64,000 nt of DNA from Diadema antillarum (taxonomy: Eukaryota): NCBI RefSeq assembly GCF_040938485.1, contig NW_027271817.1:186001-250000 (forward strand), in the 5' to 3' direction. Both the position numbers and the translations under genes were made by a program. Of this stretch, positions 22,901 through 24,946 are shown piece by piece; position 1 is the first letter of the stretch, and every line of letters starts with the position of its first letter. The notes under the pieces are model-generated. The model made no database searches and had not been told where the DNA came from. It was given only the letters and a program-made list of their open reading frames with translations.

Positions 22901-24347
22901 TGGTTCTTAGAAGGGCTCAAAATCCATATTTTACCATGTGGAATTTGTTTGCAATACATCAAAAGGGTCTACCAAGAAACTTGCCCAGCTGATGCAATTT
23001 GCCAGGATGAGTTGCTTTGGAGTAATTTGAGAACAAAAGTGTAAAATTATCTATATCGTAGTACATGACTTTCTTAAAGTGCGGGTTATGATATATTGGC
23101 CTTATTTAAAGTCAAATTTTAGTCCTAATCATTGGATTTAGAATGCTGAAATGTTCACTTACAAAATATGTTGGATTTTTTTCTTTAGATTCTAAACAAA
23201 TGACATTTGCACAAGGTCCATGACATGTTTTGTGTAGATGCTGATGTCGTGGTTATCTATCTGTGTATAACATTTATCTGAAAAATATGTGTAGATGAGG
23301 ACTTCTTAACCAAACTCTTAATGTGAATGATCTCTAAGAAGTTGGCCGAGGTGAATAGAAAAATCCACACTAGTACAGAAACCGTTTTTCACAATGTGTC
23401 AAATTTCCAATTAAACCTCCCTTTTTTTTCCGATGGAGGTGTGAGTATACAGCTAGGGAGATAAGCAGTGAATGAAGTCAGAAGATACCATTTTTCATTT
23501 ATCAAATTCTGTGCACAGTAAAATCAATAACTTTGTTCTCCAGAATCCTGCAATTTTGTGTGATTAATGTTTCATGAATGGAAAGTCATGTCTTCTTTAT
23601 CATCCAGTTATCCAGTTCAGCATTGTTCCCATAGTGATATATATATATTACTCTTCTTTCATAACTTTCATATTTTCAAGATTGAGGCTGATGTGTCTGG
23701 CACTCCAGTTGACTTGGACTTTGATTATCCAGTCACAATTGGCACGGTTCCAGCTTTCCAGCAAACCTTGCGTGACCCATCCCAAGCTCCCATGCAGCCT
23801 GGGGTTCCTGGGGGTTACCCTCCACCCCAAGGGCCCCCCATGGGTGCTGCTGGCTATCCGCCTCCAGGCCAACCCCAGCCAGGGTATCTACCTCCAGGCC
23901 AACCTCAGCCTGGCTACCCTGCACCAGGTCAGCCCCAACCAGGGTACCCTCCACCAGGTCAGCCCCAACCAGGGTACCCTGCACCAGGTCAGCCCCAACC
24001 AGGGTACCCTCCAACAGGCCAGCCCCAACCAGGGTACCCTCCACCAGGTCAGCCCCAACCAGGGTACCCTCCACCAGGTCAGCCCCAACCAGGGTACCCA
24101 CCAGCTGGACAGCCTCAAGATGCAGGGTACCCTCCACCTGGGCAACCACAACCAGGGTACCCACCGGCAGGAGAACCTCAGCCTGGCTACCCTCAGCCTG
24201 ATCCTGCTGCAGCAGGTGGATATTCCTCTGTTAAGTGCTTATGGGTGTTTGTGTGCATCATGATGATGGTGATGATTTTGATGATTAAGGTGGAGAGGAT
24301 GATAGTGATAATGATAAACATTAGTGACATTATTTGTAATAGTAATG

Positions 24348-24391
<44 letters not shown>

Positions 24392-24946
24392 TGTCAAAGT
24401 AGTAGTAGGGTTAACAGTGTCATCATTTCATTCAGCAAGAATGGGACTATACATAATCGAAAGAAATTTTTAACCAAAGTACATAATCTTTCATTCTTGA
24501 TATCTGACTTAAATGAACATGTTGAGAAACAAAGCAAAAAGTATTTTCTTTGGTGTTTTGGACATTGTAAGAGGTTACAGGAGTGGTTTTTTCCTGCATA
24601 CTTTGACCCCACAGGCCCTCTTCCTCCACCACCGACCTATGAACTGGCAGTGGGAGGCGCCCAGGAGATTGCTGGTAAGAAAGGTGCCTTTGGCACCACA
24701 ATGTATGCACCGCAGTACCCTTACTATGACCCAAACACCTTGTATGCAGCAATGGGAATGCCAAGTGCTGGGCCCCCAGTCCAGGATGGACCACCGGGAG
24801 AAACGGCACCATTGGTCACCCAACCACAGAGCTCGGTTCAGCCACCCTATAACCCCTATCAGGCCAGCGAGGGTCAACCGGGAGAAGAGGAAAAAAAGGA
24901 AGAGAATGGAGTGGCTGAAGACAAGGCAGCACTTACATCCATCTGA
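10901..24946 (+). CDS. Arrestin domain-containing protein (alpha-arrestin, ARRDC2/3/4-like) with Pro/Gly/Tyr/Gln repeat tail and PPxY motif; ~577 aa spliced
   Basis: Exons 10901-11021, 13982-14116, 14389-14621, 21300-21482, 22577-22771, 23681-24215, 24615-24946; phases are consistent (1734 nt). Arrestin_N ([11 protein letters not shown]...[11 protein letters not shown]; [27 protein letters not shown]), Arrestin_C ([28 protein letters not shown]; IPPIPP...[15 protein letters not shown]; PVTIGTVP), and PPPPTY. The last intron boundaries are inferred and its donor is weak. Confidence 0.92.
11335..11914. mobile_element. Degenerate TIR element hosting a nested MITE
   Basis: Left end agaaagatccgtctgtctggagga versus right end tcctccggacagacggatctttct; it contains the 11539-11713 element. 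Confidence 0.55.
11539..11713. mobile_element. Short hAT-like MITE, TIR CAG(T/G)GGCGGATCCAG
   Basis: 15-bp TIRs (14/15 match); flanks tcact/acact. Family copies at 13424-13593 and 37851-38002, with partial copies ending at 18106 and 37106. Confidence 0.85.
12219..12620. mobile_element. Tigger/pogo-like (Tc1-mariner) MITE
   Basis: TA|cagtcaaacctgtct ... agacaggtttgactg|TA: TIRs plus TA TSD. Confidence 0.85.
13424..13593. mobile_element. Short hAT-like MITE copy with ATACT TSD
   Basis: atact|cag(cact)tggcgtatccag ... ctggatccgcccctg|atact. Confidence 0.8.
15101..15541. mobile_element. PIF/Harbinger-like MITE
   Basis: TAA|ggctgcgttcacatagaagtat ... atacttctatgtgaacgcagcc|TAA: 22-bp TIRs, 3-bp TAA TSD, subterminal cgaatac/cgaatag repeats. 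Confidence 0.85.
16125..16625. mobile_element. Sola-like non-autonomous DNA transposon
   Basis: AATT|gagtatatgaatataagaacgacccaagtcca ... tggacttgggtcgttcttatattcatatactc|AATT: perfect 32-bp TIRs, GAG/CTC termini, 4-bp TSD, and internal copies of the TIR motif. Confidence 0.75.
16677..17148. mobile_element. Foldback MITE with long imperfect TIRs
   Basis: ttagtagaacacatca..gaaagtttgaggaaaat at the left end is mirrored by attttcctcaaactttcactgatgtgttctactaa at the right end; internal arms also pair. Confidence 0.8.
19142..19464. mobile_element. MITE-like element with perfect 78-bp inverted repeats
   Basis: 19142-19219 is the exact reverse complement of 19387-19464. Confidence 0.85.
20658..21120. 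mobile_element. Kolobok/T2-type MITE, copy 1
   Basis: TTAA|aggagacttccggatgattttc ... ctggaatcccct|ctaa; colinear with 28909-29578. Confidence 0.8.
23813..24199 (+). repeat. Coding 30-bp tandem repeat encoding [10 protein letters not shown] (11 decamer units, 13 GY-P motifs)
   Basis: The unit gggtaccctccaccaggtcagccccaacca repeats near-identically at 23942-24120. Confidence 0.95.
24340..24391 (+). repeat. (AGT)n microsatellite inside the in-frame ARRDC intron
   Basis: Direct reading; it would encode poly-Ser if the intron were retained. Confidence 0.9.

Follow-up and report, generated by a model that had tools for sequence, protein, structure and literature searches.

A conserved PGYPP repeat array in the tail of an echinoid ARRDC3-type alpha-arrestin, a candidate Ca2+-sensitive docking site, and its incidental position beside PDCD6 in Diadema antillarum

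The ARRDC gene of Diadema antillarum

The window analysed here comprises 64,000 nucleotides of the sea urchin Diadema antillarum (NCBI RefSeq assembly GCF_040938485.1, contig NW_027271817.1, positions 186,001 to 250,000 of the forward strand), and all coordinates below refer to it. Its plus strand holds an ARRDC3-like alpha-arrestin gene of seven coding exons (10901-24946, product 577 amino acids (aa)), the tail of which carries a tandem array of Gly-Tyr-Pro units; the gene for ALG-2 (PDCD6) is located on the minus strand (51-4662). The repeat tail is conserved and constrained and is a real echinoid innovation on an ARRDC3-type alpha-arrestin.

Exon 1 (10901-11021) opens with the ATG at 10901, ends at a GTGAGT donor and encodes the start of Arrestin_N with a weak Pfam match. 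Its translation is identical to residues 1-41 of an ARRDC3-like protein of Diadema setosum (P0001, 570 aa, NCBI 'arrestin domain-containing protein 3-like [Diadema setosum]'), which is also the best protein match to the tail and for which precomputed Pfam annotation lists both Arrestin_N and Arrestin_C. Exon 2 (13982-14116) is delimited by splice sites and phase, with a tblastn match of 100%. The C-terminal half of Arrestin_N is encoded in exon 3 (14389-14621, Pfam E = 7e-20), which yields 1,893 matches as a query in the representative search, the best being P0001 at 97% identity. Arrestin_C starts in exon 4 (21300-21482, E = 8.3e-9, 36.3 bits) and continues in exon 5 (22577-22771), there with E = 9e-6 and 26.5 bits, slightly below the cut-off of 27.7. 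According to its translation, exon 6 (23681-24215) completes the arrestin fold and then runs into the Pro/Gly/Gln/Tyr repeat array, and exon 7 (24615-24946, stop codon 24944-24946) encodes the conserved alpha-arrestin C-tail, 96% identical to P0001 and 69% to ARRDC3 of Strongylocentrotus purpuratus. The D. setosum ARRDC locus (L002) matches the window at 70-89% identity in non-coding DNA.

An AlphaFold2 model of P0001, i.e. of the orthologue 97% identical in exon 3, was built from a 25-sequence alignment and used for the fold search. Foldseek places Caenorhabditis elegans ARRD-6 (7usy_J, 9e-24) and TXNIP (4ll1, 1e-21) on top; VPS26 and beta-arrestins score more poorly at approximately 1e-14. 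By its domains, its fold and the PPxY motif of its C-tail, the gene is an alpha-arrestin of the ARRDC/TXNIP family, in agreement with the initial annotation. The range 23813-24946, to which the tail had been assigned there, does encode it, covering roughly the last 260 residues of the protein, but contains an intron of 399 nucleotides, and the tail is split over two exons.

This last intron (24216-24614, phase 1, GT..AG) has the only donor and acceptor that keep exon 7 in frame. The annotated D. setosum protein P0001 has the identical junction PDPAAAGPLPPPP and thereby confirms the intron, the splicing of which is based on annotated orthologues and reading phase. In D. antillarum the intron is in frame and free of stop codons, with an (AGT)n microsatellite at 24336-24408. 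A conserved exitron was rejected as the default interpretation: the orthologous D. setosum intron is 606 nucleotides long and contains seven in-frame stops, so the open frame in the window looks like chance.

The repeat array

The array extends over 23795-24196 on the plus strand and, in the translation of exon 6, consists of 13 units of about 10 residues with the pattern GY(x)P. Ten of the 13 GY units read PQPGY and nine contain PGYP, while GY is continued as GYP in twelve and as GYL in one; the 13 GY-P motifs with ten copies of PQPGY counted in the initial annotation are thus confirmed. Tandem Repeats Finder delimits a homogeneous core at 23864-24162 (period 30, 9.9 copies, 85% matches, score 382), and a tandem array of this regularity lies far beyond chance. 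Inserted where the arrestin fold gives way to the conserved C-tail, it spans about 145 residues, hardly any of which are charged. A search of solved structures with the array returned chance-level matches alone (E at least 0.23).

Across the ten core units, codons depart from the consensus 24 times synonymously and 7 times nonsynonymously, and PQPGY is free of nonsynonymous change. The synonymous skew has a binomial p of 5.6e-9 against a neutral share of 27%, i.e. the share of possible single-base changes that are synonymous; this p is inflated, as the units are related and not independent. The pattern bears on a rival explanation, which takes the array for a disordered, low-complexity spacer or a self-associating domain without a dedicated partner. 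Such an array would determine how far the C-tail can extend from the fold, or favour clustering or condensation, as the low-complexity N-terminus of annexin A11 is said to do, and would be maintained by repeat slippage. We regard this explanation as doubtful. The near-identity of the central units in DNA indicates recent slippage or gene conversion and suits a spacer, whereas the 24:7 skew and the untouched PQPGY imply constraint on the exact residues, beyond composition.

The array in other species

The array is conserved in five other echinoid proteins. In ARRDC3 of S. purpuratus (P0003/P0309, 504 aa), in Lytechinus pictus (P0005/P0310, 537 aa), in Lytechinus variegatus (P0311, 521 aa) and in an echinoid fragment (P0041) it is positioned between the arrestin fold and PPPPxY. 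The orthologues of D. setosum, S. purpuratus and L. variegatus have the identical seven-exon structure, with the array in exon 6. The unit is 10 residues long in D. setosum and 8 in Strongylocentrotus and Lytechinus (x-G-Q-P-G-Y-P-P, GQPGYPPx). D. setosum contains 12 GYP, and PGYP occurs 6 times in S. purpuratus, 11 times in L. pictus and 9 times in L. variegatus. The core common to echinoids is P-G/A-Y-P-P, and the residue after YPP varies. Differences in copy number and unit length among species are compatible with a spacer; against it, the Tyr-Pro-Pro core is invariant among long-split echinoids while spacer length and neighbouring residues change, and its survival through the change in unit length argues for selection on the motif, not on the spacer.

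Among the 150 nearest alpha-arrestin cluster representatives, at least three GYP are found in echinoid ones only. A word search with exon 7 produced matches only to D. setosum and S. purpuratus, and did not identify orthologues from sea stars, sea cucumbers or crinoids. Outside echinoderms, ARRDC2 of the insect Anabrus simplex (P0155) possesses a tandem SPYPPPPGG repeat with 8 PYP between the fold and PPxY. It resembles the echinoid proteins as an alpha-arrestin with a Tyr-Pro tandem array at the equivalent position, and differs in its PYP core, which is closer to CPYPPGGPYP of TSG101, and in belonging to another lineage with no common origin of the array. Judged from these sequences, Anabrus appears to have acquired its Tyr-Pro repeat independently at the equivalent place.

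A paralogue of D. setosum (P0069) has an irregular Gln/Pro/Gly/Tyr tail at the equivalent position. The differing Tyr/Pro-rich inserts of P0155 and P0069 hint at recurrent evolution of such inserts in alpha-arrestins. The long irregular Pro/Gln/Gly tails of the paralogues P0010 and P0069 are also what a spacer would lead one to expect, and so are similar repeats in unrelated bacterial proteins.

C-tail motifs and predicted structure

Downstream of the array, exon 7 contains PPPPTY (24623-24640, plus strand) with the single canonical PPxY of the protein (PPTY). In alpha-arrestins, PPxY is the ligand of NEDD4-family WW domains, and PPTY is accordingly a predicted WW ligand for NEDD4-family ligases; the 25-sequence alpha-arrestin alignment shows no variation at P463 and P464. 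The C-tail consensus of this alignment is PPPSYEExVxG...YAPxYPYY. Its second block corresponds to YAPQYPYY in the window (24704-24727, plus strand), a conserved element of alpha-arrestin tails that contains another PxYP and recurs in amphioxus, oyster, octopus, nematode and insect alpha-arrestins. QPPYNPY (24839-24859, plus strand, from the translation) is partly kept, as QQPPYNPN in S. purpuratus and QQPSYNPY in L. pictus. The initial annotation had listed PPPPTY and QPPYNPY together after the repeats; both are indeed present in exon 7, but QPPYNPY is not a canonical PPxY.

ARRDC2/3/4 and TXNIP of vertebrates share with the urchin protein the Arrestin_N/Arrestin_C fold and a C-tail in which PPxY is followed by a Tyr/Phe-rich block. 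We take the urchin MYAPQYPYY block to correspond to the vertebrate block of the type PPxY...YAPEF, on the basis of the invertebrate alignment consensus. Unlike its vertebrate relatives, the urchin protein carries a PGYPP insert, about 145 residues long, that separates the fold from the first PPxY, and it has one canonical PPxY instead of two.

In the AlphaFold2 model of P0001, the arrestin core (residues 1-315) reaches a predicted local distance difference test (pLDDT) score mostly above 90. The repeat array (residues 318-462) remains below 50 and is predicted to be disordered. Blocks within residues 471-510 are moderately confident (pLDDT 68-84), and DSSP assigns two short strands and two helices to residues 466-503 (window approximately 24635-24750). 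According to this model, the segment PPTY...YAPQYPYY may pack back onto the arrestin fold, in which case the array would form a long exposed closed loop. Both the predicted disorder and a post-array segment that may pack on the fold, leaving the array as a loop or linker, are in line with a spacer.

Comparison with ALG-2 ligands

Alpha-arrestins select membrane cargo for ubiquitination by NEDD4-family ligases and contact the endosomal sorting complexes required for transport (ESCRT) via ALIX and TSG101. ALG-2 is a Ca2+ sensor that recruits the ESCRT parts ALIX and TSG101. The ALG-2-binding motif 1 (ABM-1) consists of PPYP and a further YP four residues later, with PYP or PxYP tolerated at a cost in affinity (PMC5037681, PMC3397542). 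PGYPPPPGGYP of annexins A7 and A11, as well as sites in TSG101 and Scotin, are regarded as type-1-like ALG-2 sites, and multivalent suboptimal motifs have been proposed to offset weak single sites (PMC5037681). Binding of ABM-1 is Ca2+-dependent, involves Pockets 1 and 2 of ALG-2 and is lost in the delta-GF122 isoform. ABM-2 is PxPGF, in which Phe is essential; the SARAF mutation F228S abolishes binding (PMC3397542, PMC7504102).

The initial annotation had proposed that the arrestin tail resembles a multivalent ALG-2 ligand. The resemblance holds for the ABM-1 sub-core, since nine PGYP in the array and PQYP in exon 7 add up to ten P.YP, with the PGYP form also present in annexins A7 and A11; it does not extend to complete ABM-1 or ABM-2 motifs. 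The N-termini of both annexins are likewise disordered, charge-free regions of repeated PGYPP units. They differ in extending the N-terminus of a phospholipid-binding core and not the tail of an arrestin, and their units are irregular, whereas those of the urchin form a strict tandem of 10 residues (8 in camarodonts) with wider Tyr-Pro spacing. ABM-1 of ALIX (PPYPxxxxYP) shares the PxYP core with the urchin array, which lacks PPYP and has a spacing of 8 or 6 instead of 4. With ABM-2 of Sec31A and PLSCR3 (PxPGF), PQPGY of Diadema has the outline PxPG-aromatic in common, with Tyr in place of Phe (PMC3397542, PMC5037681). Judged by its motifs, the array is thus at most type-1-like and annexin-like, and corresponds to neither canonical ALG-2 motif.

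On the receptor side, the PDCD6 gene of the window is orthologous to D. setosum P0192, with introns aligning at 74-84%, and P0192 matches the structure 2zn9 at 1.5e-82. Fifteen of 17 human ALG-2 residues named in the literature (Ca2+ ligands, Pocket 3, R125, F122, Y180) are identical in P0192, namely E47, E114, L48, A51, L52, S53, F85, W89, T93, Q96, F99, F122, R125, F148 and Y180, the changes being I92 to V and G121 to T. P0192 lacks the two-residue GF deletion.

By analogy with these ligands, the PGYPP units may constitute a multivalent, Ca2+-sensitive docking array for penta-EF-hand proteins with ALG-2 as the first candidate, a function that we propose tentatively, its likelihood being somewhat short of even; among the explanations compatible with published work it is the most specific. 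Binding of ALG-2 to the tail is plausible from the sequence. The units might work like the PGYPPPPGGYP elements of annexins A7 and A11, with many weak PxYP sites summed by avidity on an ALG-2 dimer. GYPP motifs of annexin A7 bind sorcin (PMC8556303), and sorcin or peflin would be alternative penta-EF-hand partners.

Several observations weigh against a docking function of this kind. The next YP follows 8 residues on in Diadema and 6 in camarodonts, compared with 4 in ALIX and 5 in the annexins; the best ABM-1 core, PPYP, is absent; and ABM-2 is excluded by Tyr in place of Phe. The PxPGY form is moreover limited to Diadema; camarodont units read GQPGY and lack the first Pro. Low-complexity stretches rich in Pro, Gly, Gln and Tyr are widespread and occur even in bacteria. 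G121 of human ALG-2, which is located beside Pocket 1, is replaced by Thr in the urchin protein. ALIX and Sec31 homologues of invertebrates are without recognisable ALG-2-binding motifs (PMC5037681), which makes it uncertain to carry vertebrate motif rules over to the urchin. A direct link between ALG-2 and alpha-arrestins was not found in the literature. Affinity purification-mass spectrometry data sets were examined for human and Drosophila alpha-arrestins; the human raw data contain PDCD6 peptides in the purifications of ARRDC2/3/4 and TXNIP, but PDCD6 peptides also occur in the GFP and 293 controls and give no specific support.

Instead of a penta-EF-hand protein, the repeats could bind another proline-recognition module, such as WW domains of the NEDD4 family, for which they would be additional weak PY-like sites, or SH3, GYF or a CEP55-type module. 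Class I and II SH3 ligands need Arg or Lys, GYF ligands PPG with a hydrophobic residue, and EVH1 ligands FPPPP. The array is without Arg or Lys, and neither PPG plus a hydrophobic residue (GYF) nor FPPPP (EVH1) is found; the majority of units read QPGY or PQPGY instead of PPxY or LPxY. Such a module appears improbable to us, even though the array directly precedes PPxY, two S. purpuratus units read PPGY, formally a PPxY, and alpha-arrestin tails act as platforms for WW ligases (PMC3590573, PMC10945707).

A possible Ca2+-switched adaptor

The last unit of the array ends approximately 12 residues before PPxY, so that ALG-2 docked on the array could bridge or mask. Bound ALG-2 might bridge the arrestin to ALIX or TSG101, and this ESCRT coupling would bring the arrestin together with its cargo to ALIX/TSG101. 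Alternatively, it might mask PPxY from NEDD4-type ligases, as it does in SARAF. There, ALG-2 binds about 20 residues away from a functional PPxY, hinders ubiquitination of the NEDD4 type and also bridges molecules (PMC7504102). A Pro-rich site next to PPxY is common to SARAF and the urchin tail; SARAF differs as an endoplasmic reticulum membrane protein with a single strong ABM-2 (PPPPGFK), compared with many weak ABM-1-like units in a soluble adaptor. Three tandem Pro-rich elements of Toxoplasma GRA8 provide multivalent and very stable ALG-2 binding (bioRxiv 10.64898/2026.07.20.739547). GRA8 is an effector of a parasite, and each of its three elements combines an ABM-1 with an ABM-2, whereas the urchin protein is endogenous, with 13 simpler units, and a candidate ligand.

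Combined into one scheme, the echinoid ARRDC3-type arrestin would be a Ca2+-switched adaptor, in which ALG-2 dimers load 9-13 PGYPP units during a Ca2+ transient and ESCRT coupling or PPxY masking follows; as a complete chain we consider this scheme rather unlikely. The fertilisation wave and membrane wounding are candidate Ca2+ transients. The SPYPPPPGG array of the insect hints that such a Ca2+-adaptor solution may have evolved more than once.

If the array does bind ALG-2, it would provide a simple physical route from a rise in Ca2+ to down-regulation of cargo or vesicle budding, and the first direct link between ALG-2 and an alpha-arrestin. Eggs and embryos of sea urchins, with their large and well-studied Ca2+ waves, are a suitable system. 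Units of 8 and of 10 residues with one core furthermore amount to a natural experiment on the number of weak Pro-Tyr motifs needed for a functional ligand.

The PDCD6 gene

PDCD6 (51-4662, minus strand) is a gene of five exons with EF-hand Pfam matches and a penta-EF-hand product. Based on EF-hand Pfam matches and orthology, its coding exons are approximately 4662-4621, 2807-2746, 2000-1797, 847-738 and 152-51, the last one including the stop codon. In the search of solved structures, a single exon of 69 residues matches PDCD6/ALG-2 with E = 9e-36 compared with 2.5e-21 for sorcin, which upholds the initial identification of the neighbouring gene as ALG-2.

Exon 1 (4621-4662) is assembled with 42 nucleotides, compared with 44 in D. 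setosum, and is out of frame with exon 2. It shows two single-base deletions in homopolymers (TTTCC to TTTC, CAAAG to CAAG). In a spliced exon 1-exon 2 contig of sequencing run X3 the joint is placed as an extra A would predict, and a contig of run X1 covering 3954-5327 shows 7 gaps but no substitution relative to the window. For these reasons the deletions are probably homopolymer assembly errors and not signs of a dead gene.

Genomic arrangement of PDCD6 and ARRDC

The ATG of PDCD6 (4662, minus strand) and that of ARRDC (10901, plus strand) are 6,239 bp apart, and the genes are divergent, as stated in the initial annotation, which gave 6.2 kb and held that ligand and receptor are linked in the genome. 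One explanation would be a functional, co-regulated head-to-head pair kept by selection. Adjacency and divergent orientation in the window would fit such a pair, and the junction between the genes is bridged by contigs of two studies, one of 1,416 nucleotides from run X1 (3954-5327) and one of 1,100 nucleotides from run X2 (4063-5105). Run X1 possibly represents the source sample. To the extent that this can be judged, the PDCD6-ARRDC junction is real in D. antillarum.

Other echinoderms argue against a pair kept by selection. In D. setosum (OZ188194.1) ARRDC is located at approximately 0.74-0.76 Mb and PDCD6 at approximately 21.39 Mb on the same strand, a separation of 20.6 Mb. In S. purpuratus (ARRDC 1.42 Mb, PDCD6 0.39 Mb) the genes share a strand at a distance of 1.0 Mb, and in L. 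variegatus (ARRDC 50.40 Mb, PDCD6 51.73 Mb) they are convergent at a distance of 1.3 Mb, the ARRDC positions of L. variegatus and S. purpuratus being those of the cluster mates P0311 and P0309, respectively. With tblastn, no arrestin-like sequence was detected within 10 kb of PDCD6 in D. setosum, S. purpuratus, L. variegatus, Asterias amurensis, Holothuria leucospilota or Antedon mediterranea. The adjacency is accordingly absent from all six other echinoderms compared and, among the species compared, present in D. antillarum alone. The initial annotation had named this outcome, jointly with two others, as refuting its proposal; the argument from linkage of ligand and receptor fails.

The synteny breakpoint relative to D. 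setosum is located exactly between the two genes, at 4709-5077, according to blastn of the D. setosum loci L003 and L002 against the window. To its left, up to 4709, PDCD6 including its introns matches the D. setosum locus at 21.39 Mb; to its right, from 5077, the window matches D. setosum DNA that lies upstream of ARRDC (0.76 Mb). A second PDCD6 copy beside D. setosum ARRDC was considered and rejected: the window PDCD6 has introns that align with the locus at 21.39 Mb, and window positions 4650-5076 are not matched by the initial 423 bases of L002. The strand pattern is consistent with one inversion of approximately 20 Mb relative to D. setosum.

The spacer between PDCD6 and ARRDC measures at least 5.9 kb and is largely repetitive. 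Very high-copy repeats are located at 5452-6239, 6634-7421 and 3482-4072, with contig depths in the thousands compared with about 25 in unique sequence, and those within the spacer (5452-7421) make a shared promoter unlikely. Conserved bidirectional pairs keep their adjacency and orientation and share a short promoter region, with about 1 kb or less between the starts; here adjacency and orientation are not kept and the ATGs are 6,239 bp apart.

Run X3 supplies a further point in favour of co-regulation, as transcripts of both genes occur in it. None of the D. antillarum runs is recorded as RNA; X3 appears RNA-like because its depth is confined to PDCD6 exons and a spliced PDCD6 contig is present. 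Its transcript-like coverage of the PDCD6 5' end stops before 4861. As 37% of the words sampled from window positions 22500-25400 also occur in X3, both genes are transcribed in this sample, which says little about co-regulation. Taken with the comparisons above, co-regulation of a selected pair is very improbable and largely refuted. The head-to-head position of ARRDC beside PDCD6 is incidental and arose when a large rearrangement put the genes together; it has no bearing on function, and an adjacency that stems from a lineage-specific rearrangement is not to be counted as functional evidence.

Further features of the loci

In the window at approximately 32900-33400, open reading frames on the minus strand resemble a nitrilase/CN_hydrolase gene. 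D. setosum likewise has a CN_hydrolase gene on the downstream side of its ARRDC (L002:33822-35429), so synteny is kept there. S. purpuratus possesses a second alpha-arrestin gene (L006:25472-29055, 484 aa, 40-52% identical) with a Pro-rich tail, located tail-to-tail approximately 6 kb downstream of ARRDC3; no such paralogue is found in the window.

No tRNA was reported by an ARAGORN scan of the intergenic repeats. The loose-end consensus letters at 6095-6127 (GGGCGGGATTCGAACTCG) resemble a tRNA-derived short interspersed nuclear element.

PDCD6 contains a tandem duplication of approximately 370 bp (1954-2314 and 2316-2691, 92-96% identity) over the boundary of intron 2 and exon 3. The upstream copy shows the start of a pseudo-exon followed by a stop, and short transcript ends can be misplaced onto it. 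In view of the role of ALG-2 in ESCRT, it is a curiosity that in S. purpuratus a gene of the Snf7 family (ESCRT-III-like; L004:22876-25538, 214 aa) is located tail-to-tail downstream of PDCD6.

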